Below, piece by piece: positions 1 to 36,899 of a stretch of 64,000 bases of DNA. This DNA is from Cyanophora paradoxa CCMP329. Taxonomy: Eukaryota; Plantae; Glaucophyta. The notes below the pieces were generated by a model. That model did not search any database, was not told where the DNA came from, and was given only the letters and a program-made list of their open reading frames with translations. Both the position numbers and the translations under genes were made by a program. The stretch's first letter is position 1; every line of letters starts with the position of its first letter. The DNA lies in the NCBI GenBank assembly GCA_004431415.1, contig QPMI01000015.1, forward strand, positions 248,001-312,000. The letters run 5' to 3'.

Positions 1-597
1 GACGAGATTTACCCCATCCAGTGCGCCGCCCCCCCCCCCGCCCCTCTCCCTCTCTGTACCCCCACCCCCCTGAGCCCGCCTTCGTTCGCAGGGAGGCGAC
101 GGAGAGCGACCTGGCGGACATGGTGGAGGACATCGCGAACCTCGACCTGGACCGCGACCCCTACCGCGACGAGGAGGCCGCCGCCGCCGTCGACGCCAAG
201 GTTCCCCCCTTCCCCCTTCAGTTTTCTTAGAGAGCCCCGCCGACTGTGGGTCGCAGCTGCCCGACAAGTTCTACCTCAACGGGAAGACGCTGGACTTCGG
301 GCCGGCTGTGGCGCAGAGCGGCTTCCACCGCGTCGAGGCGCTCCGCATGTACCTCGAGCAGCAGCTCGGCGACGCCTGCTTCCGCGACGTGCGCCTGCCC
401 CTCTTTAATTGCGACTGTGCAGACTTGACTTCTTCTGATGTCTTCTGCAGTCGTACGCGTGCATCAAGGAGGCGCGCGATGCGGAGGACGAGGTCGCCTC
501 GGACCGCAAGCTGATGAAGATCATGGGCGCCAAGATCGACTGCGCCTGCCTCATCCACCAGCTCATCTACTGCGAGGAGATTATGTACAGCATGTGA
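1..597 (+). CDS. 3' end of probable NIMA-related (NEK1-like) kinase gene; 5' part lies outside the window
   Basis: Spliced exons give ...LPDKFYLNGKTLDF...SGFHRVEALRMYLEQQLGD...CLIHQLIYCEEIMYSM*, with TGA at 595-597. This resembles the conserved C-terminal domain of NEK1-type kinases. The kinase domain itself is not in the window. Confidence 0.55.
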
Positions 598-898
598 GGG
601 CCTCCATTGTCGTCGGCCCATCGAGAGGCTCGCTTTGCGAGTCGTCTGCGCATGCCTTGTCAAGTTGTGTATCATAGTGCTCGGCCTGGCCCGTCACAGC
701 GTTTCTGCATCTGGGCCCTGAAGCTGTATTCGAAAACGTCGATAGGCTAGGCTAGGAATCAATTCTCTCAGCAGTTGTATGTGAACGCCGCGCAGATGTA
801 CCAGTCGATGTCGTGATTGTAATGTCATAGAATAATACAACACCTCTGCACGCGTACATGTACAAGCCAGATCTCGCAATACTATGATGGCCGCTGAG

Positions 899-3600
899 CT
901 AGAAGCCAAACATGTCGCGGGGCCGCCCCTGCAGGTCGGCGATGCTGATGGAGATGCCGCCGCCCTTGGGCGGCTCCACGTCCGGGGCCCGCCGCTCGCG
1001 GGGCCGCGGGTGCACGCCCTCCCGGTCCTCCTCCGCCGCCGCCTCGTCGCCGACCCGCAGCGCCTCCTCGCGCCAGGCGCGGTGCGCGGCGATCTGCGGC
1101 TCCATCGCCACGCGGCGCGCGTCCTCCTCGCTGTAGGGCCGCGAGACGTGCCGGAAGAGGGCCGGCAGGGCCAGCATCGCGTAGATCGCGAGGCCGGCGC
1201 GGGCGGCCCGGAAGCAGAGGTCAGGCCCCAGGGCCGTCGCGGCGCGGAGCTCGAGGGGATGGAGGGGCAGGGCCCAGGTGAGGGCGGCGGAGGGGACGCC
1301 GGGCTCGAGGGGTACGCGGAGGGCGAGGGCGCGGAGGCGGGGGGCGAGGGCGACGGCGGTGGCGGCCCAGGCCACGGAGCGCCAGGCTGAGTAGGCGGCG
1401 AGGAGGCCGCGGGCGCGGCGGAGCCCCGCGGCGGCGATGTCGTCGGGGGAGGGCGGGCGCGGGGTGCAGCCGGCGGCGGTGCGGTCGCGGGGCCAGCGGC
1501 GCTCGTACGCGGCGAGGAGGGCGCCGATGCCGTCCCTGAGGCGGCGGTGGGCGGCGGCGACGGAGGGCGAGGCGAGGGCGGCGGCGGAGAGGAGGAGCGC
1601 CGCGGTCTCGATGGGAAGGGCCAGCGGGTGGACCGCGCCCCGGAAGAGGAAGGCGGGTACGCGGGCCGCGGCGGCGACGAAGTAGGCGTGGAGGGAGACG
1701 AGGAGGGGGCCGAGGCGGGGTACGTCGAGCAGGAGGCTGGCCTCCTGCAGGGCCAGGGGCGCGGCGAGGAGGATGGGGGGGAGGAGGAGCGCCTCGGCCG
1801 CGCGCCAGCGGAGGACCCACTCGGCGGGTACGATCCCCGCCGCCGCCGCAATGGACGCGACGGTCGCCGCGGGCGTGGCGGGGGCCGGAAGGGGCGGCGC
1901 GGCGGCGGGGGCGCCGGGAGGGCGGGGTCGGAAGCGGAGCGGCAGGGCCGGGAGGGGGCGGGGGCCGCAGGAAGCGGGCCGGGGCGGGGACGGGGACGGG
2001 GCCCTGCGGGGGCGGCAGGTGGAACCGGAAGTTGGAGCGGGCGATGGCCGTGAGGGCCTCGATCTCGGCGGAGGCGGCGGCCGCGGCGGCGGCGGCGGCC
2101 GCGCGGCCGACCTCGAGCGCGGCGGCGAAGTCGGGGGCGAGGGCGGCGCAGGCGGAGGAGAGGGCGGGCACGAAGCCGTGGAAGAGGAGGTGGATAGTGG
2201 CGCGCATGAGGGGGAACGCGACCGCGCAGCCGAGCAGGAGGTCGGCGATGAGGACGGGGATGTTCTGCCCGCGGCGGCCGCCCGACCAGGCGAGGGAAGG
2301 ATCGTTTCCCTGGGCCAGGTGCACGGCCAGGCGAACGGGCTCTACGCAGGGCACGAGGAGGTACCACAGGAGCGCGAGGAGGGGCCGGGGCAGGAGGTTC
2401 ACGGCGCGGGCGAGGGCCGACCACGCCTCCGGGCCGCGGAGGGGCGCGAGGAGGGCGGCGATAGCCTCGAGGGCCCGCGCGGCGGGGGCGGGGAGGCTGG
2501 AGAGGGCCGAAAGGGGCGCGAGGGCGCCGGCGAGGCCGCGGAAGGGGGGGAGCGACGCCACGAGGCGGAAGGGGAGGGCGGCGCCGTGAAGGAATGGGGA
2601 GAGCCAGCCGAAGGGAACGGAGGCGAGGGGCTCGACGGTGCGGCAGAGGAGGAGCCAGAGGGCCCAGCGGCCCCAGCCCGGGAGCACGCGGAGGAGCCAG
2701 CGGTAGGGGGCGGAGAGGGCGCGCAGGAGTCGCTCCTCGTCGGCGGTGTCCAGCACCTCCTGCGCGGCCAGCTCCCTCAGGTCCAGCATTTTCCCGGAGG
2801 ACGTCGGCTCCGCGAGCGGGAGGTCCCAGCGCTCGGCCGCGGCCCGCCGCAGCAGTGCCACGCGGTGCTCTAGCCGCCGACGGCGCAGCGCCGCCCGCCC
2901 CGTCGCGACCTCCGCCTCGAAACGTTCGAGCTCCGCCCACTGCGGGCCGCGCGAGCGCCCGTCGGCTGACCCGAAGCGGTCCGAGAGGTGACGCCCGAAG
3001 CGAGCCCATGCGGGGGGCAGGCGCTCGAGCTGCGAGGCGCGCAGCGGGGCTGAGGCGGTCACCGCCGCGGAAAAGACGAAGAACGACACGGCGGCGCCGT
3101 GCAGCCGGGCAGTCGAGGCCGGCAGGAACCGGAGGGGGCCCAAATCTACCGCCTGCCTCAGATATTCGGGGACTGGCTGGCGTCCGCGAGTACGTCTCCG
3201 CGCCGCCCCTTCAGCGGACGTCTCCGCCGCCGGCTGGGCGGCCGGCGACGACGCGTCGACGAGGGGGTCGTCGGCTTCCCACCACCGACTCTGGGCGGCC
3301 GGCGCCCGGCCGGCGCCCGGCGGGTCGTCGGAGATAGCTTGCGGTGCTGTGTGCGCATCGATCGGCCCGGCCCCCGCGGCGCTCGGGCGCGGCTTCTTCC
3401 GCCTCCAGCGCAAAGTGCGGCCCGCGCCCTGCCAGTGCGTGAGCGGCTCGGGGGCGGCTCACTGGGGCACTCGCGAACCGGAATACCGTTCGCCCGCGGC
3501 GGTGCGATCGGCGCGACGGCGCCGAAGGCCGCGCTGGCTTCCTGCGACCGGTTCAGCCGGGGGTCTCCGCCGGGGAGAAGCGCGCTCAAACCTGCATCGA
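899..3600 (-). CDS. Hypothetical multi-pass membrane protein; start uncertain, with an unexplained frame change near 1900-2000
   Basis: Hydrophobic Leu/Ala/Trp-rich segments occur in ORF 1221..3413 up to about 2000. They continue in another frame (TVASIAAAAGIVPAEWVLRW... then ORF 899..1375) to the stop at 899. Confidence 0.5.
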
Positions 3601-3802
3601 GATCACGCGCTCGCTTGCATCGCGGTGCTCGGGGCTCCGGTAACCAAGGACCCAAGGCGAAGTTTGGGGTACGTGCGCAAGTGCCTTCGAGAGGTCCAGC
3701 AGCAGGCTTCGCGGTGCTTCGCCGCCATTACCACCGCGCCGGGTGCACGCCGCTTTACATCATCGACGCACTCGCTCGAGCCAGCAGCGCCGGCCGCGCC
3801 GA

Positions 3803-4590
3803 ATGAAGGGGACGAAGGGCGATGGATCGCCAGGTTCGCGGCTTCGCACGCGAGTTCAACGCGTCATGCCGAGCCTGACACAGCGCAGTGCCCTCGCTCC
3901 TCCACCACGTAAAGCAGGCGGACACGAAACTAGCAGCGCACATCTTTCACAAGTGTGCCGCGTATCGAACAGTCTGGGAATCGTACTCCTGGAGCGGAGA
4001 TGGCTGGTTCTGGCTTAGCGTCGGCCCGTTGCTCTTTGGAACGATGTACTTCGCCGGCGATTCAGCAGCAGACGTCGTCGCAACCGTCGTCCTAGGGTTC
4101 CTGCTGGACGCTCTCTGCATCCTGCTCATCAAGCTCGTCTTTAAGCGCGAGCGGCCACCGCACAACCGGCCAGATTACCCGTTCTTTGGACCTGACAAGC
4201 ATAGGTGCGCCTGCGCGAGCCCCCAATACCGCGCTTGCGCTGACTCGCTTTCCTTCGCGCAGCTTACCCTCTGGTGCGATGCGTATAAGCGTCGCGCTTA
4301 GCTTTCCCAGCAGGGGGTGTTGACGCGTGCAACCCGCAGGACACACATCGCGGGCCTTCTTTATCGCGTGCTGGGCCTTACACAGGGTTGGATGGACGAT
4401 GCGATCGCTTGTCCTTCTTCTCTGGGCGTTCGGCATCGGCGCCTCCAGGTTAGCATTGGGCCGGCACTACCCCTCGGATGTCTTCCTAGGCTCCGTGCTC
4501 GGCTGCCTGGAGTTCAATTTCCTACGATTCGCTGTGCTAGACAGGGGTTTCTCCATGACCACATTCATATCGAGTCTCTACCAGGCTTAG
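3803..4590 (+). CDS. PAP2-family lipid phosphate phosphatase (PLPP6/PPAPDC2-like)
   Basis: C1 motif KLVFKRERP; C2 motif HSLPSGH, assembled through an 11-nt exon at 4263-4273; C3 motif SRLALGRHYPSDV; transmembrane helices. Confidence 0.85.
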
Positions 4591-5652
4591 CATCTCTCCA
4601 AGATCTAGACCAGCTGCAGCTAGATGTAGGCAGGCTATTGATAGTGTATTTTCATGGAAGGCAAGGCAAGCTGCAGGGACGGACCACACTCTCACTGTCC
4701 GGTAACGGCTGCTCGCGATGACAAATCTGAACATGACGAATTCGAATCTGAAAGCTCAAGGCATGCACAATCTGCAATCAGGCGTCGCCAGGTTGCTTGG
4801 CGAAGTTCGATTGCAACGTTAACAGCTGCAGCTGCCAGGGCTGTGGTCATGGAGTCCATTCAAAAAAAATGATTAAATTAACTCCGCGGCCCAGCCTAGC
4901 CTCGAGCTCGGAGGTCCAGTAACTCTGCGGCCCAGCCTACTAGGCTATAGCTATATTAGCTACGTATACAGGCTAGCGCTAGGCCGCGCCTCGGAGGACG
5001 TCGACCGTCGGACTAGGCCTAGCTATAGCTATAGGCCTAAGATTCATGCACTGCGGCATGCTTATAATTATAACCGTTGAACTTGATAAGATACTATGAT
5101 ATCGCCGAGTCGGCGATAATATCACTGAGTCACTATCATAGTATGTTAATGAGCTCATGATACGTATACGTATACGTATACTATGATATCGATCAACTTC
5201 CAAAGTTTGGCCCACTGCCAGTGGGTTCATGATCATGATCGATAGCCGATGATCCGATGATCATGATCATGATCAGGGCTCCCGGCCGCGGCCCCCCATC
5301 ATGGCATGGCCATCATGGCATGCCCAACCATTGTGCCACGTCACGGCGTTGTGGTTCATGATCATGATCGATACCACTCAGTGACTGATGATCATTGTGC
5401 CACGGTGCCACGCCGTGACGGTGCACGTGGCGTCGGGCACCCCCAAAATCTCACAGCCTGGCAGGGCCCGGCGCGGGGGTCCCCACCCATATGCATGCCA
5501 CCGTCATACACGAAATTTGATCGAAATGTCACCAAGTTACTAAGTATACGTACTAGTTATATAATATTAATTAACTTAGTAACAGCGCTAGCGGGCCCCA
5601 TGGCCAGCCGCTGAGCCGGGGGGACTCAGTGTGACTGCAGGGAGCTGCAGGG

Positions 5653-5695: not shown

Positions 5696-6061
5696 GAGAG
5701 CTGGCCCAGTGGCCCGGTGGCCATGGGATTCTCCGGATCCCGGATCCACCTCAGCTAGCTAGATCTGCAGGTGACACGCACATGCATATGTACAATTTGC
5801 AATCTGAGATGCAGGCCGATATGCAGGTTTGCATGATCATGACGTAGTACGTATACGTCATTTTTTTTGTACGTCTACATTTTCTATTCAACTCCGCAAC
5901 TTATATATATATGTATATGCAGGCATGCTTTGGAAAATATATATGGAAGCGATTTAGATAAGGCTGAATAGGGATCGTGCCCACCAGCGCGGGTACAGAA
6001 ATCAGAAGCTTTCTACAAGCCAAGGTCCAGCGCGCGCCGAGCAGGTTGTAGCCTCCAGTGC

Positions 6062-8847
6062 ATGCCCCGCAGGTAGCTAAGGCGCGATGGGAGGCGGGGG
6101 AGCGGGGCCCTCAACAGGGCAGCCGCCCCAGGAATCGAGCTCGTCCAGCTCCTTGACCCAGATCCTCGTAGTGCGCTGCCTCGAGCCGTGCACGCTTGCA
6201 CCTCTTCTGATTGCGTGCAAAGGTCGAAGACGACTCATCAACACGAAAGATCGTTAAGCGGTTTCTGGAGAAGCGCCTCCCCGACACGCGGGTTCGCCTG
6301 GACCGTCAACCCGGAGGGCGGGGTTACACTTACGCGCGCTTTGCAGGTCACAGCTGTTACATCCGGATCGGAAGCTATGCAGCTGCTCGAGCAGGGGCAC
6401 CGCTTTGATCTTGTGCTGTCGGACGTGTTCATGCCGGTGCGTCCTCTGGCACCGAGGCGCGCTTAGCGCTAACGCATGTCATGCTGTGCAGGGCATCGGT
6501 GCTGGGCCCGCTCGCTCTCCCCCCGCGCGCGCTTACCCCGCTCGATCAGATGGGCCGCAGCTCGTCGATAAGATGAGGAGGCTGCCCCCGTCGCGCGAGA
6601 CGCCTGTGATCTTCATGTCTGTGACGAAGCGCGTCGAGGTGGTAAACGAGTGCTGGAGGAAAGGCGGTTTTGACTTCTTGAGGTGTACACGCCCGCTGTC
6701 GATGCGTGCCACGATCACTAGCTCACCCCGCGTGCAGCAAACCCCTTAAGTTAAAGGAGATGGAAAAAGCGGTGTCTGATTGCCTGGTCAAGCACGGGCA
6801 CGCTGGACTGCCTGGGGTGTGCCCTGTTCCGTGCTCTCCGTGGGCGGTTCTGTTCACACAGACATGTGCAGATTCCCGGCTCATCTCCGCTTGGACCCGC
6901 TCCACACGAAGACCCGCTGTACATGGAGCCAGAACCCCAGCCTATTCCTTTTCGAAGCAAAACGACAACAGAAGTGGCAATCCACGACTCCCTCAAACGT
7001 CGTCGCGAATCTCTTGCGACAGGCGAGGTCGGGAGCGACCCGGAGGCAAAGAAGTTTCGTATTTTGCATCTTTGCGACGACCTGAGAGCCGAACTGCTGG
7101 GGTGCTCACTTTGTCGGTTTCGCCCTTTTCCTTTTCCTGATTGCCCTTTTGTTCTAGGGAAAGAGCGGCTTTCTGCTATCGAAAAGTGACTGGCGATGGG
7201 CCGATTGGCGTTCACAGCGTTCCCCCGGAGCTCTTGGCGCTTGTCTTCAGTTTCTTGAGTGGCCGTGAGCTCGGGGTAGTCATCCGAGTCTTCAGGGAAT
7301 GGCGCGAAATAGTGCTTAACCACGACGTGCTGGCGAGGAGGTGGGTACACTGTTAATTTCACATTGAAACCGCATGACTCCTCGCTAGGTTTTATCAATC
7401 GAGATACCGGACGTCATACTTCGTTCACAACACTGTTGACTGGAAAACAAGAGTATCCATTATGGCCGACGTGTGCAACAACTGGCGTGCAGGCAGTTGC
7501 CAGGTTTTCGGTGCACCAGGTCAGTAAGCATGGCTGGAAATGTGGTGCATATACCTTTGTGACGCGATGGTCAGGTTTGGACCTAAGCAATCCAAATACT
7601 GTTCGCCAAGTCAGTGTTGGCACGTATCAGCATCGTTTCGCAGCAGCCTCTCACGATGGTATGCCGCTCGATTTCGTTTGGTTGGCTACTGGCTCATGTT
7701 TCCTAGGTTACATCCGGGTGTGGGAGGCACGCAACAAGAGCTTGAATGCCCAAATCCCAACTGGACCAGCAACCACATTCCGTGATGGCGATCGCCCGGA
7801 CTTCTATTTGAAGATTGCGGTGCCTCGCCCAGGAGCTGCACACCGACCAGTGCCCTTTTTGAGGCTGAAACAGTCCTCAGTCGTCGTTGGTTTGTTCGCT
7901 TTTTTTTTCAGATGATTTTGTGCTCACTTCGTCTTGCAGGCTTCAAGGATGGTGCAGTGATTTGTCTCGACACTGATTCTGGTGAATGGGAATGGCATCT
8001 CCAGATGCATCAGGTGGCTTTTCTGTTATGTGTTGATCAGATGTCTTGATCGAAACTGACTGGACTAATTTCGTGTGCACAGTCCTCCAGTATGTTCGAA
8101 GGAATGCACCTGCATGAAAACATGCTTCTGGCGTACACGAAGTCGTCACCAGTTGTGGATGTGTGGGATGTGTGCACCCGATCTCATCTGAAATCGTTTG
8201 TGGGGCATCGAAAACGGGTCAGCTCGTTTTTTGCTCAGTCAACGTTTTTTCCTCATCACAGAGCAGGTCCTCTGCCTGGATTCGGATGGGAACTTCGTTG
8301 CCACGGGCTCTGCAGACAAGACCATAATCGGTTGGGACTTAGACACAGCACAGCGGCTTTCGACATTCGAAGGCCACGAAGGACCAGTGTATGCAATGCA
8401 TATGGGCCGCAACTATATTGCTGCTGGGTCCCATGATCGCACTGTCAAGGTATAAAATTCTTGGCATGTTCGTCTTCATTCCTAATCAATTTCACTAGAT
8501 CTGGGATCGGAGGTCAGCGGAGTGCGTAATGACCCTGTCGGAAGCAGGACACAGAGGGCCAGTCACGTGTGTCCAGTGGGACGAGGTCATGAACAGAGTG
8601 GTCAGCGGAGGCGATGATGCTTTTGTGTGCGTCTGGGACGTTCGCAAGAATCACTGCCTGTCGCGCCTTGAAGACCCGGCTGGAAAGGCAATTTCCATTA
8701 CGTGTATGGCCATTGATGATGAGAAGATCGTGACAGGCCATACGGATGGCGGAGTGCGGATTTTTGTCCTTTTTGCCTTCATTAGTGATTCTTATTCTGG
8801 ATTCTTTATCCATTCAGGTCAACCTCTGGAATTTCCGTCGGGCATGA
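6062..8847 (+). CDS. Response-regulator receiver + F-box + WD40-repeat protein
   Basis: Spliced REC domain: ILVVEDD...DLVLSDVFMPGIDG...PVIFMS...FDFLSKP. F-box: VPPELLALVFSFLSGRELGVVIRVFREWREIV. WD40 repeats: VATGSADKTIIGWD, AAGSHDRTVKIWD, VSGGDDAFVCVWD, VTGHTDGGVNLWN. Intron phases join all three parts in one frame. Confidence 0.8.
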
Positions 8848-9917
8848 GTACAACTGCTGCAGCCAGCAGTGCGAGGAGCTAAATCAGTTCCTATTCTTGT
8901 CCTTTTTTTGCCTTCATTGCCGCAAATTCTTTCAAGCGAGGAGTGAAATCAGTTCTGCATATTCATATTCTTGTCCTTGTGCCGAGCATGTTTACACTGC
9001 GCTCCGTTGCGGAAGGCCCAGCCCTGCAGCAAGCTGTCCGGATCCGGCCGGGAATAGGGCGATTGGCCATGGGGTACGGGGGTTTGGGTTAAGACTTTGA
9101 TGTAAGGGGAACGTGAGACATATGTCTAGTACTACGGTATGATTTTCAAAAGTTCGAACTTCGGTGATGAGAGAGTTTGATTTGAGGGGATTACAGTTAA
9201 CTCGTACTTCACGTAAATAAAAGCGCACTTGAGACTCCGGTCGACGCCCGACGGCTCGGCGGTCGAATATGATAGTATAACGTAATTGACCGTCGGACGT
9301 CGACGTCGACTAGTTTGATTATCAGTAATTCTGAGAAACTTTGATTTGTGCAATAATTAACAAGTGGTCATGCGCATGCATGGAGAGGATTAATTTTGCA
9401 GTTAAAAAAATTGGACATGGCCATCATGGCATGGCTAGTAGACCGTCGGCCAGTCTTGATCACACTGATCATGAGTACTCATTGATCATGACCGTCAGAC
9501 TAGTAGAACTTTCAAATTAAAGCTTCATGATCAAAGTTTGAGTTTGGTCAGAGAGACTTTGATTTGAGAAGAAGAGTATGTATAAGACACGCCCAAGCCA
9601 GCTGTACGGTATTGACGAAAGAATCAATAGAGAGAGATCGAGCAAGTAAAAGACACTTCCAGAATCAAGCCGCTGAGCCGCCGGCGCCCACCGCTCTTGG
9701 GGGGGTACACAAACGTCCTATTCGGCGCCGGAGGTAGCCGGAATTCTAGAGCCGGAGGGAGTCCACCGGGCTCTGATACGAATTCTGATCTGCGAAGCAA
9801 CTCGAGCAAGCGCTGATCTGATCGCCTTCTGCTTGGCGCCATAGTGCGGGCGCGCTGACGCGGGCGCGGTGCCGCCAACCAGCGGATTAGATAGGCACCA
9901 GTCAGATTAGCTTAGCT

Positions 9918-25961: not shown

Positions 25962-26228
25962 GCGTCGCGCGCGCCGCGAACGTCGGACGGCCCTCGCCAT
26001 CCGAGGAACATCTGAGCGTGCTGTTCGCATACCACAAGCACAGCAACACTGACTCTGCGCGCACCCCAGGTCCGAGCGCCACGGCAGGCGCCGCCACGCA
26101 AGCCCAGCGCTAGCTGGGGTTAGATCCCCACGCGCGCGTCGCGCGCGCCGCGACGGCCCTCGCCACCCGAGGAACATCTGAGCGTGCTGTACGCATACCA
26201 CAAGCACAACAACGCTGACTAGCGCGCA
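25962..26228. repeat. Imperfect direct repeat of about 95-100 bp (25962-26063 and 26136-26228)
   Basis: Shared core gacggccctcgcca(t/c)ccgaggaacatctgagcgtgctgt(t/a)cgcataccacaagcaca(g/a)caac(a/g)ctgact. Confidence 0.9.
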
Positions 26229-26254
26229 GGAAGCGCGGGGCGCGGGCGGGGCCG

Positions 26255-29200
26255 TCACAGGTAGCCCGACTCGCGCATGATGCGGCGCACAGTGCTGATC
26301 TCCGACCCGAGCGTCTCGAGGCGCGACTCGAGCTCCTTCTTGCGCCGCCGCTGCTCGGCCGTCTTGCCCGCCGTCGAGGGGAGCCGCGCGTACTCCGCCT
26401 CCAGGCGGTCCTTCTCCACGCAGAGGCCCATGAGCGTCTTCTCGAGCGAGTTGAACTGCAGCTCGTCACGCGTCCGCGGGCCGTCCACCGCGAACGGCAC
26501 AATCTCGCCCTCCCTCCGCCCCGCGGGGGCGGCCGGCGCCGCCGCCGCGGCCGCCGCGGGCGGCGGGGCGGGCCGCGGGGCGGGGGGCGGCTCGGGCGCG
26601 GAGGGCGGCTCGGAGAGGTGGCGCGAGGAGTGGTGCCGGGAGCGCGGCTGCTCCTCGGCGAGCTTGGGCGGCCCCGCGTGCTTGAACTTCTGGTACACCT
26701 CCAGAATCGCCTCGAGCTGCGGCGCGGCGCTCGCGGGCGGGCGGGCGGGCGGGCGGGCGGGCGGGCGGGCGGGCGGGCGGGGGTTGGCGGGGGTATGATG
26801 GGAGGGGCACCTCCTCCTGGCTCGGCAGCCCGTGTTCCAGCGGGTCGATGCGCGGCTGCGGCTCCGGCGCCCGCGGCGGAGGGGCCGGCGGGGGAGGCTC
26901 CGGGGGCGGGGCCGCGCGTAGCGGGGCGGGGTGACGGGCCGCGGCGGCTCGGGCTCGGGCGACGGCGGCTCGTCCCAGGCCATCGCGCGGAGCGGCGGGG
27001 AGCGGTCGCGCTCGCGCTCGTGGTGGCCGTGGACCGAGCCGGCGTCGCTCCCCGTGAAGAGGTTGAAGCTCGTCTGCTGCCCCCGCGCCGTCGAGGGCCG
27101 CGCCACGAGCCCCTGCAGGCTCGTCCGCGGCCGCGCCGCGATCTCCTTGAGCGCCGAGCCCGGGCCCGGCAGCGCCCCCACCGAGGCCCGCACGGGCGAG
27201 GCCGACGAGCGCCCGCCGCCGCCGGCCCGTGCGAGAGCGCCCGCGGCGCGGGCGCCGCGCTCGCCGCGTGCGAGCGCCCGCGGGCCTCTGCGTGCTGCGG
27301 GCGCGCCTCTATGTGCTGCGGGCGCGGCTCTGGCGCGGCAGCGGCCGCCGAGGCCGCGTGGCGGAGCTCGCGGCGGGCCTCGTTCAGCTGCCCGCGCGTC
27401 TCGGCGTGCGCGGCGCGCTCGTCCTGCAGGCCCTTGGTCGCCCCGTCCAGTTTGATCCGCAGCATGTTGCACTCCTTCGCCAGGCGGTCCGCCGCCCCCG
27501 CCGCCTCCTGCCGCCCCCATCAGCGCGGCCCGGCCTCGCCCCGGCGCCCCGCGCCCGCCCGCGCCGCACCTTCTCGCGGCGGACGGCGGCCTGGAGCTCG
27601 TCGCGGAGGACCTCGATCTGCTCCTTAAGCTTGCCCGTGTCGCGCTCACCGGCGGCGGCCTTCTCGCGGGCGCCGTGCAGGTCCCGCCGCAGCGCGTCGT
27701 TCTCGAGGCTCAGCTGCCGGATGGCCGCCACGGCGCGCTTCTGCTGGCCCTCCGCCTCCTCCAGCTTCTCCTCCAGGCCCCGCCGCCCCGAGAGCGCCGC
27801 CTGCTCCTCCCGGTCCCGCTCCTGCAGGGCGCGCTCCTGCTGCGCCCGGCCCCGCGCCAGCTCCTGCTCCAGCTGGCCCACCTGCAGCGGGCCGTCGGCA
27901 AAGCCCGCGGCGCGGGCGGGGGGCGGTGGGGCGCGCCCGCGTGAGGGCCTCGGCGAGCTGCGAGCGAAGCTTGGCCTCGGCCGCGGAAGGCGCCGCGAAC
28001 TGCGGCGGCGGGGGCGCCGCGGAGGCGGAGGCGGCGCCGAGGCTCGGCGCGGCGCCCTGCGGGGGCCCCGGAAGTGAAGCGGACACGCCGGTGGAGGGCG
28101 GCTGCGGCCGGCGGCGGGGCGCCTGCGGGCCGGCTCGCTCGAGAGAAAGGGGGAAGGGGCGCGGGGGGTACGCACGCGAATGACGACGTCGCCGTCGACG
28201 ATCTCCTCGATGCCGGAGGGGGCCTGCTGCTGGGCCCGCCAGTACTGCTCCGGCGCCGGCGCCGCCTCCCACGCCGACGAGGTCCGCGCCGGCGTGGCGC
28301 CGTGCGAGGGCGGGGCCGCCGGGGCGGGCGGGGACGGCAGCGGCGTCGGCCACGCGTTCTCCGCGGCGGTCGTCTGCTGCCCCGCGTCGTGGAACGTCGC
28401 AATGGCTCGGTCCGTCCGCGGCGCCGGGGCCGGCGTTGACGCGGGGCCGGCTGGGGCGCGGGCGCGGGGCCGGCTGGGGCGCGGGCGCGGGTGGCGGGGG
28501 CGGGGGGCCATGGCGACGGCGTAAGGGAAGGCGCCCGGGTGCGCCTGGAGGTACACGGTCTGCGGGGCCGGGATGTACTGCGGGATGGGGACCGGCTGGA
28601 CCGGCGGGGGTGGAGGCGGCGGCGGAGTGGGGGCGGGGGCGGCGGGGGGCGGGGCCGGGGCCGGGGCCGGGGCCGGGGCCGGCGGGGAGATGGCGGCAAC
28701 CGCAGCGGCGACGGAGAGGCGGTTGGTCATCTCGTGGAGGCGGCCGATCTCGGCGTCGTACCGCTCCTGCGCCCGCCCTCAGCAGGGCGGGCGCCAGGGC
28801 GGGGCCCCGGGCAGCAAGGGGGGGACGCGGCGCGCCTTGAGGGCGCGCATGCCGGCGGCGTTGACCTCTTCCTGGACCTCCGTGTTCCGCTTCAGGCTCT
28901 CCAGCTGCCGCTTGATCGGGCTCAGCAGCCGCTCCGCGTCCCCTTCTTGGCCTGCGCGGACGCCTCAGCGACGGCGCGCGACGCGAAGGAGAGACGGCCC
29001 GGCCCGGCGCACTCAGGCGGGTCACGGGGGCGGGCTGCCCGAAGGAGAGCTGGCCGCGCGCCGGGGACGGGTCGAACGGAACCTGAGCCGGCGCTCAACG
29101 GGGCGCCGCAGCTTAAGCGCCGGAGTCGCAAACCTCGCTGATGCGCACGAGGCGCGTGTTGACCATAAGCGACTCGTCCTCTGCGGCCCCGGCGTGAGCT

Positions 29201-30194
29201 GCGCGACACGGGAGGAGAAGTTGGGCCCTCGGACCCTCGCTCTCCGCGTGGGCGACAGCGCTCGCGTTGTCCACCGCGTCGTGTCCGTAGCGGTCGGGCG
29301 CGGGGCCCCGGCGAGACACGAAGGCGGGCGTCGGGGCCGGCGCCGCGGTCGGCGGCGGCCCGTAGAGGACGGAGGCGGGCGAGTCGGGGACGCGGGAGGC
29401 CCGCGACGGCCCGCGGAGGGCGGAGTGGGCGGAGAAGTCGAGCCCGCCGCGCGGGGCGGAGGTGACCTTGTTGCCCTTGTCGCGGCGCGGCGGCTCGGGC
29501 TCGGCATCGAACGTGTCCTCGAACTCGGGCTCGTCTTGCTCGGCGGGCGGCGCCCGCCGCTGCTCCGCGAGGTCGATTTCCCGCCCCAGGATGCGCTCGT
29601 CCTCGCGGTGCGGCCGGTGCCGCGGCGGCGAGGCCCGCGTGGCCAGGGACGGGCTGGTCGCCCGCTGCGGCGCATCCGCGGACGAGGCCTGGGGGGAGGG
29701 CGCGCGGAACGTCGGCAGGCCCTCCCGGCTCTTGATGGCACCCGCCAGGAACCTGCCGAAGGCTTTAGCTAAGCGCCCACTCGCTAGCGCCGCCCGGCCG
29801 CAGCGCTCACTTGTTCAGCGTCTGTGCGCTGAGGCCGCCGCCGCGGGACTTCGGAACGTTATCGCGCAGCGGCACGTTCTCGCCGCCAGCGGGCGGCACG
29901 CTGGACCCGTCCGAGGCGTGCGCTTGCGTGGAGCTGAGGCGGCCGGGCGTCAACGAATCGGGTGGACGGGCAGGCGGGGAGCGCGTACGCAGACCCGAGC
30001 AGGTGGTCGCTCGTTGTCCGAGCGTATTCAATGGCAGCCATCGCCTGAGCCTGCAGGGCGGGCCGGCCAGAGCTCAGCCCGCATCGCTCGCGCGCACGGC
30101 CGGAAGGGCGCACTTTGAAATCGGCTAGGCTACTCAGGACGCTGTCAACTTCCGCGTCCTTGGAGGACCAGTCCTCTGAGAACGCGGAGGACAT
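26255..30194 (-). CDS. Large proline-rich/coiled-coil protein with an M-phase phosphoprotein 9 (MPP9)-like C-terminus
   Basis: Probable start MSSAFSEDWSSKDAEVDSVL at 30194; coiled-coil exons; C-terminus LEKTLMGLCVEKDRLEAEYARLP...KELESRLETLGSEISTVRRIMRE resembles the MPHOSPH9 C-terminus. Confidence 0.6.
26733..26780. repeat. (GCGG)n microsatellite in an intron
   Basis: About 12 tandem GCGG units. Confidence 0.9.
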
Positions 30195-30382
30195 CTTCGA
30201 TGTGAGCTCGCTGCGCGTCAAGCACGACTGGTCGTTGCTTTGGCGTTGTACCCGTCCCCCGGCGCGGTCACTCCGCAAACGTTGTAAACAGGCGCCGATT
30301 GCACGCGCGGCGCGAAGCAGCAGCGATGAAATCATTCACTGAGCAAGCCTGGTCCTGAGCCCGCATCGAGTCCGGTCCAGCG

Positions 30383-33300
30383 ATGTTCGACGCAATCAAG
30401 GGCCGGAGCAGCAAGGCCAAGAAGCAGGAAACAAAAGAGCAGGTAAGCAGATGAGCGGAGCGCGGCGGGGCCGCCGGACCCCCACAACCAGAACCCTGTC
30501 ACCCGCCTGCGCGGGCGGGGGCCGCCTGCATGGAACGCGAATCGAGCGCTGACATTGATCGACGGCAGTTCATCGAGCGTACAAAGCACGAGCGCGAGCA
30601 GCGACGAGACACACGGGTCTTGGAGGCGTCCGTGGTATGCGCCCCTCGGATGAAGCTACGGCTCGCCGGCCCAGCTGACGCCGGCGGCAGCTGCGCCTGC
30701 AGCAATGGGTGCGGCGGATCCAAGAGGCGCAGCGGGTGCGGCGGCAGAAGCGGGAGGCGTGGGACCATGCGTACAGGGACTTCCTGCCGCCTGACTTCGC
30801 GACGCTGGATCTGACGAAGAGCGGCGACTCGCTGCCATTCTCGAAGGTGCAGCCCACGGCGGAGGATCTCTACCGCGTCGTCTCCGACTTCCTGCGCTTC
30901 TACCGGTCCTACGATGAGGCAGACCACCGCCGCCTCCTCGTCGTCTGCCACGTCGTCCTCCAGAGGTGCCCCCGCCCCGCGCTCCGTGCCCCGCGCTGCG
31001 TCGCCGAGCCGCGCGCACGTGCAGCATGGAGAGCACGCAGCCGGAGTACAACTACGCGTCGAACGTGCTGGAGTCTCGCTCGGGGGCGTGGCAGTTCCAG
31101 ATCCGCTCCTTCCTGCTCGTCTGCATGCGGAAGATCTCCCCCCCGCCGACCCTCTCGCTCCCGTCGCTCGCCTCGGCCAGCTCGGGCGGGCCCCCCCAGC
31201 TGCGATCCAGCCGGAGCCTCGGGAGCAGCCGGGCGCAGAGCCGGGCCCAGAGCCGGCTGCACAGCCGCACGGGCAGCCGCGAGCTCGAGGAGATGCTAGA
31301 GAAGGAGCGCACGCTGGAGACGCTGCCCCTCCGCTGCCTCGTCGTCTTCACTGACGCGACCTCCTGGCGGGTCGGCCCCCTCCCCCCGCCGCCCCTCCCT
31401 CCCCCGCGCTCACGCACACCCGCCCCCCAGATCTGCACGACCGTGATGTTCACGGACACGGGCGGGCGCCTCGGGAAGCAGACGTTCTACTCCAGGGCAC
31501 GCCCCGCCCCGCCCCGCCCCGCCCCGCCCCGCCGCCCGCTGAAGCCTTGCTCGCCCCGCCAGATATCGATGGGGTTCCTGGACTTTCTGGTGCAGGAGGG
31601 CCTCTACAACTTCGTGCACACGGGGCTGGAGCGGGCGCTGATGGGCCACAACGCGCAACTGCGCTCGGCGCGCGCCGTCGAGGAGTTCTTCAAGGCGGTC
31701 ATGATGCTGGCCGTGCGTCCGCTCCAGTTCCCCCAGACGTGGCCCATCCCCTCCAAGATCCACGACAAGTACCTCCAGGTCCGTGCCTCGCTTCAGACGC
31801 CCTTGGGTTAAGCTTAGCTCCTTAGCCGCGCGTCTCTCTCGCCTCCTGTACTTCGAGGCCCTTTAGATCGTTTTTGAGGCTCCCTGCGCTTTATCGTGGC
31901 GCCCGACGCTGGACCGGATCCCCTTGGCTTGAACCTAGCTCCCCGCGCCCCTCCTCCTTCTGACGCCCCCCCTCCGCTCAGTTCGCGCTGGCGACTTTCT
32001 CGCACGCGAATGTTGCGGAGCGGCTGCCGCCGACGGCGGCGGGCCTCTACCAGCGCCGCGAGACCTTCTGCGGCTGCGTCATGGCCCTCGAGAACGCCGT
32101 GCGGCCCGGCGCCCCCGCCCCCGTCTACAGACGCCCAGCGCGCCTAAGGAGGCGTCCCCGCGCGCAGGCCTCGGCGGTGCTGCCGAGCCCCCCGATCTCG
32201 ATGCTGGCCGGCCACGAGGCCCGCCTGCGCGCCCTCGTGGGCAACCTCGTGGAGTTCGCCGTACCCTGGCTCCCGTCCCTGGAGGACATGGTACCCCCCT
32301 TCGTGCAGCTCCTCCACCTGGTCTTCACGCTGGACTACGAGTTCCTGTACCCGGGCGCCTCCGGCTCGGGCAAGGCCGGCGGCGTGGTCGGGGACTTGGA
32401 GCCGGGCTTCCTGGCCCAGGTGCAGCACCTGTGGAGCCCGCACTTCGTGCGGCTGCTCTTCCGGCGGCTGCTCGCCCGCGAGGAGCGCAAGCGGGCCGAG
32501 GCGAGGGCGAACGCGCCGCTGGACGGCACGTCGCGGAGCTTCTTCGGCACCAACGAGCTCGGCTTCAACGCGCAGGCGGCCGCCGCCTCCGTCGCGCAGC
32601 AGAAGGATGCCAAGGCCAAGAAGCGGGGGCTCCTGGGGGTCTTCGGGCGGGGCCACGGCGAGGCGCCGGCCCCGCCGCAGGCGCAGGCGGCCGGCGGCTC
32701 GGGCCACTCGGGCGCGGGCGGCGGCGAGGACGAGGGGACGAGCAGCAGCTCCTCCAAAGGCGGGCGCAGCAAGTCGCGGGGCGGGGGTACCATCGGGGGC
32801 CCCAGCATGGCCGCCCTCCGCGTCTCCGAGTCCGTCCTCGTCTGCAGCATGTGCGTGGCGCCTCCCCTCCCACCCCTGCACCCCAGAGAGACACCCCAGA
32901 GCGCTGTGAGCTGCCTTGAGCCGTGCCCGTCCGCCTCTGACGAGGCGACGGTCGGGGCAGGTACGTGGCGCTGGCGCAGCGGCTGCGGGGCCAGCGGGTG
33001 CACATCCTGAACGCCCTAGCCTTCCTCCCGGACCTCCTCGCCGGCGTCTTCCGCCTCGTCCGCGAGAACCGCCTCCTCGAGCTCCACACCCGCCCCTCCT
33101 TCGACGACCCCCTCGTGCGCCCCGCCCCGCCCCCTCTGCTTTCGCTCCGCCCCTTGGCGAAAGTAGATGCATCGCCTTTAAATAAGCGCCGACTCCTTAT
33201 CCTTGTCCTCCCCTTCTCCCTCTCCTCCACCCCACCCCACTCCCCCTCCCCCTCCTCCCCCCCTCCCTCCCCCCTCGCTCAGACGGGCCGCGGCAGAGCC

Positions 33301-35176
33301 CCCTCTTCTCCTTCTTCTGCGAGTGCTACACGCACCTCCTCATCGCCGTCGACGACGAGGGTCCGCCCACTCCTCGCCTCGCCTCTTCGGGTCGGGTCGG
33401 CGCCGACGCGGCCGCAGAGTTCTTCGTGCGGGAGAGCCCCTTCCCGCTGCGGGAGAACGCCATCCTGGCGGACATGCTCAACCGCCTTGTCTTCCGCATG
33501 CACTGGCGCGGCTGCCCCGACGCGCACCTCGCGGGGGCGGCCTCGGCGCTGCTGCACCAGCTGCACGTGCGGGACGCGCGGCGGGCCTTCTGCAGCCCCT
33601 CCATGTGGCTCCTCCAGGAGCGCGACGTCTCCCCGGACGCAGTCCTCCAGGTCAGCTCGAGGCCCTTTTAACACCGTCTGGCGCCGATCTAGAAGATTAA
33701 AAGATTACGCATAAGAATAAGACTCGATCGGGCTGTCCTTCCTGTGGCGCGCCCCGCCCCGCATCTCATCCTTCATTCGCGGCGCAGGAGGCGCTGCAGG
33801 GGCAGCCCCGCGCCCTCGCCGTCCTCAGATCCATCCCCCACGTGTGAGCGCCCAGTACCCCCCTCCCGCCCCTCCCCCCCATCCCCCACCCTCCTCGAAC
33901 CCGGGCGCAGCATCCCCTTCGAGCGGCGCGTGGAGCTCTTCCGCGCGCTGATGGCCCGCGAGCGCGCCGCCCACCAGGCGCGCCCCCTCCCGCCCCCGCC
34001 ACGTCTTTCCCGCCCCGCTCTCAAGCTGAGCGAGCCCGCAGCGGGCTGTGCACATCAAGGTCCGCCGGAACCTCGTCATCGAGGACGGCTTCGCGCAGCT
34101 CGGCGCCCAGGCGAGCGGGCCCCTCCCCAGCCCCACGCTCTCTCCTCCTCCTTCTTAGCGGCGCGGCGGGGGCAGGCGGCGGGGGCGCTGCGGAACCCGG
34201 TGAAGGTGACCTTCGTGAACGCGGCGGGGCTGGAGGAGGCCGGCATCGACCAGCGCGGCCTCTTCAAGGAGTTCCTGGAGGACACCCTCCGCCTTGCCTT
34301 CAGGCAAGCCCCCCGCCTCGTCCTCTTCCCCCCGCCCCCCTGAGGCCCCGCAGCTCGTCGTACGGGCTCTTCGTGCCGAACGCGAAGCGGGACCTGCACC
34401 CGTCCGTCACCTCGGGGGTGGCGCAGCCCAACCACCTCGCCCTCTTCCGCTTCCTCGGGCGCCTCCTCGCCAAGGCCCTCTACGAAGGCATCGTCGTCGA
34501 GGCGCGCCCCCTTTCCCTCTGCTTTTCTTCCCCCCCCATCTACTCACTGCTTCGCCCTTGCCCGCGTGCAGATCCCCCTCGCGCCGTTCTTCCTGCTGAA
34601 GCTGCTGGGGCGCCGCCCGACGATCGAGGACCTGCCCACGCTCGACGCCCCCCTCTACAAATCCCTCTGCTTCCTCAAGACCTACTCGGGCAACGTCGGC
34701 GACCTCTCCATGGACTTCACCGTCACGGACGACCTCGTGACCTCCTTTCCTCCCTCCTCCCGTGGGGGTACGCCCTTGTCTGACCGGCGAGCTCAGATGG
34801 GGAGGAAGGTGGTCCACGAGCTCCGTCCCGGCGGCTCGAAGGTCCGCCCGGCTCGCCAGCTCGAACTTCCCCGATCCGTCTCGAACCCGGGACCTGCCAC
34901 CCGCAGATCTCCGTCACGGAGCAGAACCGAATCGCCTACGTGCACCTCATGGCCGACTACCGCCTGAACCGCCAAGCGCGTACCCCCCTCCCCTGTCTTC
35001 CCCTGTTCTGGTTTTCCTTACCCGCCCCGCAGATCCAGCCCCAGTGCGACGCATTCCTCACCGGATTCTACGTCCGCACCTCTACCCCCTCGCTTTCTTC
35101 CCCTCCCCTCGTGACGTCATTTCCCCCAGGACGTCGTACCCCCCGACACGCTGCGGCTCTTCAGCTCCCCGGCTGA

Positions 35177-35207
<31 letters not shown>

Positions 35208-35930
35208 CAAAAAAGAGGAATTTTGCCCTGCACCCACGCTTTCGCCTCATCCCCCCGCAGCTGCAGCGCCTTATCTCCGGAGACAATGCGGAGATCAGCG
35301 TGGACGACATGAGGCGCCACACACTCTACGCGGGGGGGTACACCCACGACAACAAGGCGAGCCCGCCCTCGTACCCCTCTTCGCACCGCCCTGTCCTAAC
35401 CGGACCAGTTCAGGTCATCAAGATGTTCTGGGAGGCATGCTGGCCGCCACCTGGCCCCGCCCTCGTTTCCGCCGCCCGCGCCTCTGATCGAAGCCGGCTC
35501 GGCAGGTCGTGGAGGAGATGAGCGGGACGGAGCGGCGCGCCCTCCTCAAGTTCGCAACCTCGTGCTCGCGGGTCAGTCGGCCCACATGAAGCCAGTGGCG
35601 CCGCGCATCGCCCTGACGGGCGGGGGTCACGCAGCCACCGCTGCTGGGCTTCGGGCACCTGCAGCCGCCCTTCACGATCCACCAGGTCCAGACGCAGGCG
35701 ACCACCTCCTTCAGCTTCTTCGGGCTCGGCGTGCAGGACACCGACAGGCCCGCCTCGCGCCGCCCCTACCCAGTACCCCCATCCCCCCTGCTTCCTGACC
35801 TCGTCGCAGGCTGCCGACGGCGGCGACGTGCTTCAACACGCTCAAGTTACCCGCCTACAAGAAGAAGAAAACGATGCGAGAGAAACTCCTGCAGGCCATC
35901 TCGTCCTCCTCGGGCTTCGAGCTCTCGTAG
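30383..35930 (+). CDS. HECT E3 ubiquitin ligase, UBE3B/UBE3C (UPL6/UPL7) family
   Basis: N-terminal REQRR + IQ-like segment; HECT motifs [65 protein letters not shown]; C-terminus GFELS*. Confidence 0.9.
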
Positions 35931-36899
35931 CCCCCTCCCCACACGCTCCCCCCCTTCGCATCGGCTCCCCGCCCCCCTGCCTTTGGCCTTCCTGCCTCCT
36001 ACAGCTTGGATGCCTCGTCTTAGTTTACCATACAGTGTCTTGATTCCACGAAACTATAGAAACTACAGACTACTGGCATAATAGGCTGGGCTAACGGGCA
36101 TGGACTTGAGTTCCAGGAACAGCTTCTGCGTTATATTGATCTTCAACGTTCATAGGTAATTGCTCAGCCGCTGAGCGGCTTGAATTCTAGTATCCCGTAC
36201 ACGTAGTACGAACCATATGCATGGCCTGCATGCGCAGCTGGGCCGCCCAGCCTGGCAGCTGCGCATCATGGCATGCAGCCTGGCAGCTGCAGCGGCCCGT
36301 GCATCTCACAGTCTGCCATGATGCCCGCAGCCATGATGCAGCCATGATGGCCAATTAATATTGCAAGTCACTGAGTGGCAGTGGCACTGCGGCATTATCA
36401 TCATGGCATGACCATATGCATGAGTCGACGATGCCATGATGGGGCTGACGGTGAGTTTACGGTTCCTGAGTCGACGTTCCTAACTTGTAACTTTGCAACT
36501 AATTCAATATTAACGTTTAAATGTAAGTCAACGTTGGCCCGTATGCCATGATGCATGTACATCATGGCATCATGGCATGTGCCCGCGGCCCACTGGGCCA
36601 TGGCCAGTGCACGTGGCCTGTGGCCCAATCGGATTCCGGGACCCGGAGCTCGGACCCTTGGCCCGAATTAATTATGAATTTACTAATGTTTAGTGAGACT
36701 CAGTTAATAAGTTGCATGGTCATTGAATCATTGATTGTTAATAAGAATGGCCAAAGGACTAGTTTTAGAGCTACTCTGGTTTGAGGTCATGAGTCTCTGA
36801 GGCTCTAAACTGGGCCAAGTGCAGGCTGGGTAGGTGCAAGCCCTGAGGCTAGCGCTGATTGTATGCATGTTCCCGGCTCAATTGCCACAAACGAAGGGC

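Follow-up and report, generated by a model that had tools for sequence, protein, structure and literature searches.

The signals known to gate receptors of the SCF (Skp1-cullin-F-box) ubiquitin ligases are light (ZTL/FKF1), iron and oxygen (FBXL5) and hormones, and the known outputs of receiver domains are transcription, second-messenger enzymes, chemotaxis and bacterial protease adaptors. To our knowledge, F-box proteins and receivers have been linked only in trans, as in the pairs FbxA/RegA and KMD/ARR. Here we describe a gene of the alga Cyanophora paradoxa in which the two are joined. It lies on the + strand of a stretch of 64,000 nucleotides of contig QPMI01000015.1, called the window in what follows, and its product carries, in this order, a receiver domain (REC, residues 26-140), a linker of about 110 amino acids, an F-box (residues 251-295) and WD40 repeats that make up about seven blades. 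RNA evidence confirms the gene and shows it to be expressed as a single transcript.

Several described systems come close to this protein. The human receptors FBXW7 and beta-TrCP/FBXW1A/FBXW11 and the fungal sconB/Met30 share with it the order of F-box, short helical segment and WD40 propeller, and the blade count of beta-TrCP matches the seven WD-type endings of the Cyanophora protein, which differs from all of these by the receiver at its N-terminus, the lack of a detected D-domain, the atypical form of blades 1-3 and an insertion in blade 2. The logic of an N-terminal sensor followed by an F-box and by a repeat domain that binds the substrate is also that of plant ZTL/FKF1/LKP2 (LOV-F-box-Kelch) and of animal FBXL5 (hemerythrin-F-box-leucine-rich repeats), in which the ligase receptor itself responds to the signal. 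However, the sensor would here be a phospho-accepting receiver instead of a sensor of light or of iron/oxygen, the repeats are WD40 instead of Kelch or leucine-rich, and no sequence relationship extends beyond the F-box. The bacterial adaptors RssB (ClpXP, RpoS) and CpdR provide cases in which the phosphorylation state of a receiver controls the delivery of substrates to a protease, and the receiver of RssB aligns with the Cyanophora REC at E about 4e-9 to 4e-8; these adaptors feed AAA+ proteases directly, without F-box or WD40 repeats, whereas the output of the Cyanophora protein would be ubiquitination, in a eukaryote. Finally, FbxA/RegA in Dictyostelium, KMD/type-B ARR in Arabidopsis and ZTL/PRR5-TOC1 likewise couple proteins of the two-component type to SCF ligases, but in these systems the receiver is a separate protein and is the substrate, while in Cyanophora there is one polypeptide.

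The most likely function of the protein, to which we assign a probability of roughly 55%, would be that of an SCF substrate receptor switched by aspartate phosphorylation. The protein would attach to Skp1 through its F-box, a WD40 propeller of roughly seven blades would bind the protein to be ubiquitinated, and Asp77 of the receiver would take a phosphoryl group from a histidine phosphotransfer (HPt) protein or from a hybrid histidine kinase. Phosphorylation would then re-shape the alpha4-beta5-alpha5 face of the receiver, which would switch the ligase receptor in one of two ways. Either the protein would be driven to dimerise, as FBXW7 and beta-TrCP do by means of their D-domain, or its propeller or F-box would be blocked, or freed from a block, within the same molecule. 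In this proposal we infer the phosphorylation, the binding of Skp1, the kinase that provides the input, the substrate, and the sense in which the switch works.

One transcript joins receiver, F-box and WD40 repeats

The coding region occupies positions 6087-8847 of the window, on the + strand, within a compact and intron-dense gene that spans 5998 to about 9000. It consists of 16 coding exons separated by 15 introns, all of them GT-AG and all within a very narrow range of lengths, 48-69 nucleotides, and its 649 codons form one frame, open throughout, for a product of 649 amino acids. A manual exon model, based on the GT/AG sites and on the three forward frames, was corrected with RNA contigs. 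Pfam and other searches were run exon by exon, then with the database proteins P0001, P0002 and P0122 that are introduced below.

The transcript evidence comes from public sequencing runs. Thirteen of them hold about 0.54-0.55 of the sampled words, which is the share expected for spliced RNA; runs of the DNA type hold up to 1.00. Four runs of the spliced type, belonging to four different studies, were assembled over window positions 5900-9000. Each of the four yielded one spliced contig, 2105-2220 nucleotides long, that runs from 5998-6020 to 8978 or past 9000. After application of the cut shifts stated by the alignment tool, all 15 predicted introns are found to be removed at the exact predicted junctions in the contigs from 4/4 runs. 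Since the contigs contain none of the 15 introns, they derive from spliced RNA; and since splicing joins the exons for receiver, linker, F-box and WD40 repeats in an open frame, these exons belong to one mRNA. The original prediction, made from the letters of the window, had joined these four parts in a single spliced frame, and the contigs of the four studies bear it out. It had also named the outcome that would speak against it, namely that REC and F-box/WD40 lie on separate transcripts: this is not the case, each contig containing the whole frame. The phase-2 splice that it had placed between linker and F-box is the one in use, with the joint 7101|7158 present in the RNA contigs.

Could the fusion be an artefact, produced by chimeric assembly or by read-through between neighbouring genes? 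The public gene model does differ, with its 410 amino acids, and the RNA nature of the runs is a guess. Yet the contigs lack 15 introns, the exons at the boundaries of REC, linker and F-box are spliced together in four studies, the frame is open throughout, and the independent transcriptome of another organism carries the same architecture, all of which makes an artefact extremely improbable. The public model, P0001 (EukProt tig00000076_g2376.t1, Cyanophora paradoxa, 410 amino acids), is identical to the window model over its residues 1-401 and ends in a frameshifted tail of 9 residues. It departs from exon 11 (7707-7889) through a splice that is absent from the RNA contigs, and therefore lacks almost the whole propeller.

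The RNA contigs also settle the exon structure of the receiver. At the joint from 6437 to 6549, all four contigs have five additional letters, GCATC, because a micro-exon of 7 nucleotides, GGCATCG, lies at 6492-6498. The introns on its two sides measure 55 and 51 nucleotides, its residues are also present in P0001, and the correct reading of the receiver, with its canonical loop MPGIDG, requires it. The original exon model had missed it, between its third and fourth exons, and was to that extent incomplete; a first exon model with a weak donor at 6440, reading MPVHGPQ, was rejected, as the RNA contigs show the micro-exon. The ATG at 6062, initially taken as the start, did not hold either: it opens an upstream reading frame of 4 codons ending in TAG, and the coding start is at 6087. 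The features of the gene, in window coordinates, are the following.

5998..6086, + strand: 5' untranslated region; RNA contig starts at 5998-6020
6062..6076, + strand: upstream open reading frame of 4 codons (MPRR, stop); the sole ATG of the transcript upstream of 6087
6087..6170, + strand: exon 1, residues 1-28, Gly/Ser-rich N-terminus and start of REC beta1 (RNA contigs; identical to P0001)
6223..6291, + strand: exon 2, acidic pocket E30, D31, D32, with the D31-D32 codons at 6229-6234 (RNA contigs, structure alignment)
6347..6436, + strand: exon 3, predicted phospho-acceptor Asp77 (codon 6422-6424) in LSDVFMP (Pfam, RNA contigs, structure alignment)
6492..6498, + strand: 7-nucleotide micro-exon GGCATCG, with flanks cag| and |gtgctg, supplying G-I-D of MPGIDG (RNA contigs of 4/4 runs; P0001)
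6550..6682, + strand: exon 5, REC alpha3-beta4-alpha4-beta5, with Ser107 (6618-6620) and Phe126 (Pfam, RNA contigs, structure alignment)
6738..6816, + strand: exon 6, Lys129-Pro130 (K129 at 6739-6741), REC alpha5 and first part of the linker; REC extends to residue 140 (6774) in Pfam (RNA contigs, Pfam)
6872..7101, + strand: exon 7, Pro/Ser-rich, poorly conserved linker with KRRR (196-199), KKFR (214-217) and the conserved FRI(L/V)HL (RNA contigs, orthologue alignment)
7158..7340, + strand: exon 8, last part of the linker and the larger part of the F-box; Pfam match from residue 251 (7216) (Pfam, RNA contigs)
7389..7519, + strand: exon 9, remainder of the F-box (to 7398) and helical segment between F-box and propeller (RNA contigs, Pfam, orthologue alignment)
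7575..7658, + strand: exon 10, WD blade 1, atypical (RNA contigs, orthologue alignment)
7707..7889, + strand: exon 11, remainder of blade 1, and blade 2 with a conserved insertion (PRPG..RPVPFLRL) (RNA contigs, orthologue alignment)
7940..8013, + strand: exon 12, where blade 2 ends and blade 3 begins (RNA contigs, orthologue alignment)
8083..8217, + strand: exon 13, blade 3 and first part of blade 4 (Pfam by exon, RNA contigs)
8267..8449, + strand: exon 14, canonical WD40 blades 4-5 (WD40 51.1 bits; RNA contigs)
8499..8753, + strand: exon 15, canonical WD40 blades 5-7 (WD40 36.8 bits; FBXW7 as best natural PDB match; RNA contigs)
8818..8847, + strand: coding part of exon 16, last strand (VNLWNF) and stop TGA at 8845-8847 (frame, RNA contigs)
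8848..9000, + strand: 3' untranslated region; one contig ends near 8978 and two others extend beyond 9000

Some features of the surrounding DNA may be recorded here. The start of the last intron (8753-8790) and the 3' untranslated region (8886-8925) share a repeat of 22 nucleotides (82% identity), with GCCTTCATT after it in each copy; loose letters of this shared motif stand at the end of one RNA contig, and the motif may be a small duplication. Upstream of the gene, at 5217-5373, lie short repeats rich in ATGATC. An exact direct repeat of 18 nucleotides (CATGGCCATCATGGCATG) flanks the gene at 5305-5322 and 9416-9433, the two copies being 4111 nucleotides apart. When the flanks of the gene were compared with the window by blastn, no longer repeat family was found and the flanks are not repeated elsewhere in the window. 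The G+C content of the gene is 0.55 in exons and 0.52 in introns; blocks of very high G+C (0.68-0.78) are found at 1-4000 and 26000-36000, against a background of about 0.50-0.60.

The receiver domain

The Pfam profile Response_reg (PF00072) matches exons 3 and 5 over its positions 25-53 and 57-97, which are consecutive and collinear. In P0001, the same profile scores 86.6 bits (cut-off 30.2) over residues 26-140, and covers profile positions 1-110 of 111. The domain aligns end to end with the solved receivers NtrC1, ARR1, SLN1, CheY and RssB, with E from 1e-8 to 1e-12, and E30, D31 and D32 of the acidic pocket, the predicted acceptor D77, S107 in the Thr/Ser position, F126 in that of the aromatic switch residue and K129-P130 are in register with them, all canonical. 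The spacing is that of CheY: 30 residues from D77 to S107, and 22 from S107 to K129. The motifs in which the canonical residues had originally been recognised, VEDD, SDVFMP, IFMS and SKP, are all present, and the alignment of the active site with the solved receivers supports that recognition.

What marks a CheY-like receiver is found here: a profile score above the cut-off over the whole domain, together with the active-site quintet. What marks the plant pseudo-response regulators (PRR/TOC1) is not: the aspartate and the pocket are kept, no CCT domain appears in the Pfam search, and the PRR-like protein P0097 is only a distant match of REC among the matches listed. By these comparisons the domain classifies as a receiver, not as a pseudo-receiver. 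A query with the REC of the orthologue described below gives 168 bits for P0001. After its own orthologue, the closest relatives of REC in sequence are the receivers of bacterial-type hybrid histidine kinases, with 28-38% identity and at most 117 bits. In those kinases the receiver is C-terminal, whereas the Cyanophora REC is N-terminal to a eukaryotic ligase module.

The orthologue, P0002 (675 amino acids), comes from an MMETSP culture transcriptome of a second organism. It has the same architecture and is 49% identical overall to the window model in local alignment; Pfam finds in it, in the same order, REC (82.9 bits), F-box-like (33.5 bits) and WD40 (80 bits). P0122 is the P0002 protein with a longer N-terminus, on a JGI contig of 2631 nucleotides from sample 3300017186. 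Identity varies along the alignment: 69% in REC, 57% in the F-box, 53% in the WD40 region, 36% in the segment after the F-box and 34% in the linker. Every active-site residue of REC is invariant, and identity reaches about 89%, by count on the alignment, over residues 100-136, which extend from beta4 to the first part of alpha5. Judged by these identities, the receiver is the most constrained part of the protein. In receivers at large, the alpha4-beta5 surface, which falls within this region, moves on phosphorylation and usually carries the output; the near-invariance of residues 100-136 is as would be expected of an output surface in use.

The same conservation bears on a second explanation, under which the receiver is a recruiting module: it would dock an HPt protein or a hybrid kinase for ubiquitination by SCF, or act as a phosphate sink, and in both cases the protein would terminate the phosphorelay by feedback. 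HPt and kinase partners bind receivers around the active site, a region that is almost invariant between the orthologues, and F-box proteins that act in trans are known to control two-component proteins by proteolysis (FbxA on RegA, KMD on type-B ARRs). However, a conserved substrate-binding WD40 propeller of the FBXW type (53% identity) would then be redundant, and we consider such a recruiting role unlikely.

A third explanation is that the receiver is never phosphorylated in vivo, and is an orphan kept as a constitutive structural or dimerisation domain, in the manner of plant pseudo-receivers. Pseudo-receivers are typically without the acceptor aspartate or the pocket residues, whereas E30, D31, D32, D77, S107, F126 and K129 are kept in both organisms despite an overall identity of 49%, which makes an unphosphorylated domain distinctly unlikely. 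In favour of it, no partner gene lies nearby in the window, and a 2018 survey of the 2012 C. paradoxa assembly counted one histidine kinase (PMC6324907). For a receptor switched by phosphorylation of Asp77, the function that we prefer, the candidate inputs are a kinase-type phytochrome or the hybrid kinases of the alga. The phytochrome CparGPS1 reportedly ends in a histidine-kinase module. It is listed for C. paradoxa in a review (PMC12558739).

F-box, linker and WD40 repeats

The F-box is recognised by two Pfam families. F-box-like (PF12937) scores 27.8 bits on exon 8 and 28.6 bits on P0001, over residues 251-295, for a cut-off of 24.3; F-box (PF00646) scores 20.7-23.3 bits for a cut-off of 20.5, and the margins are small. 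The F-box motif P-x-E-L-L...W is in place. Compared with PDB sequences, the F-box exon has weak matches, the best at E 0.06. Scores barely above the cut-offs (27.8-28.6 against 24.3 bits, and 20.7 against 20.5) and weak structural matches are what one might see if the protein were a receiver-regulated scaffold outside SCF, its F-box binding Skp1 without a cullin, or being vestigial. But the F-box is the second-best conserved domain (57%), and genuine SCF receptors have their F-box, helical segment and WD40 repeats in this same order: a scaffold of this kind thus seems highly unlikely, and an SCF substrate receptor remains the function that we favour.

Between REC and F-box, the motif FRI(L/V)HL is conserved about 30 residues upstream of the F-box. 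The linker had been credited with a pattern resembling a bipartite nuclear localisation signal, KRRR...KKFR. The pattern itself is present, at 196-199 and 214-217, but its reading as a localisation signal is weak, because it is not conserved in the orthologue. The segment that follows the F-box has no Pfam match.

C-terminal to the F-box, exons 14 and 15 match WD40 with 51.1 and 36.8 bits (cut-off 27). The presence of WD40 repeats, which the original prediction put at four or five, is thereby confirmed; their number is not, as seven WD-type blade endings can be read in the protein, the last four canonical and the first three atypical. The best natural PDB matches of this region are FBXW7, then beta-TrCP, the structure clusters nearest to the Atlas model of the orthologue are FBXW7, FBXW11 and sconB/Met30, and the nearest sequences are fungal beta-TrCP-like F-box/WD40 proteins, with 26-33% identity. 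Searched against 1.84 billion cluster representatives, the F-box exon matches no beta-TrCP or FBXW7 protein at E<=0.001. On the strength of these matches the gene is assigned to the FBXW kind, and not as an orthologue of any named subfamily.

An AlphaFold2 model of the F-box-WD40 part of the orthologue, computed with 28 sequences, has a mean predicted local distance difference test (pLDDT) of 62.6; confidence is high in the last four blades only, and the model is unreliable for F-box, helical segment and blades 1-3. The window contains a second region coding for WD40 repeats, at about 50800-51530 on the + strand, detected by local tblastn with a fungal F-box/WD40 query (E down to 4e-11).

Rarity of the architecture and the proposed switch

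The exhaustive search with the F-box exon, 60 amino acids long, returns three proteins at E<=0.001: P0001 (100% over the query), P0002 (53% over the match) and an unrelated protein with a double F-box. Among the matches listed for the whole orthologue, its F-box-WD40 part or its REC as query, PF00072 and an F-box family occur together only in P0002 and P0001. A metagenome scan with patterns derived from the orthologue gave just generic bacterial receivers, with 23-32% identity; no ESM Atlas cluster of at least 50 members combines REC with an F-box; and full-text literature searches gave no description of a receiver-F-box fusion. The searches for similar architectures were sequence-based, with no query by architecture as such, and convergent REC-F-box fusions of unrelated sequence may exist. 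The original suggestion that a REC-F-box-WD40 fusion is uncharacterised agrees with the sequence, Atlas and literature searches, in which no widespread equivalent appeared. The fusion is undescribed in everything searched, and it is built from two well-known modules. On present evidence, its architecture appears confined to Cyanophora and one other microbial eukaryote.

Several points weigh against an SCF receptor switched by aspartate phosphorylation. The rest of the window contains no HPt, kinase or further receiver gene at E<=0.001. The linkers of both orthologues have no Pfam match at E up to 10, and this search detected neither another known module nor a D-domain, which in FBXW7, Cdc4 and beta-TrCP lies immediately upstream of the F-box. 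The gene is seen in two organisms only, so covariation is not usable. The propeller is putatively closed and seven-bladed, with blades 1-3 that are atypical and have no confident AlphaFold2 model, and pLDDT is below 50 at segment residues 129-228. Some F-box proteins, moreover, work outside SCF complexes.

We further propose, more tentatively and at somewhat less than even odds, that the protein would form a direct wire from His-Asp phosphorelay to ubiquitin, in which phosphorylation of Asp77 through a sensor-kinase pathway would turn the SCF receptor on or off; it would be a counterpart, in a eukaryote, of the bacterial RssB/CpdR and an analogue, based on phospho-Asp, of the light-gated ZTL/FKF1. 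If this is true, a single change of the aspartate to alanine or to glutamate should lock the ligase receptor in one state, and the gene would offer a natural template for engineered degradation under phosphorelay control. Ubiquitin-dependent proteolysis would then join the outputs of receiver domains, and aspartate phosphorylation would join the inputs of SCF ligases.

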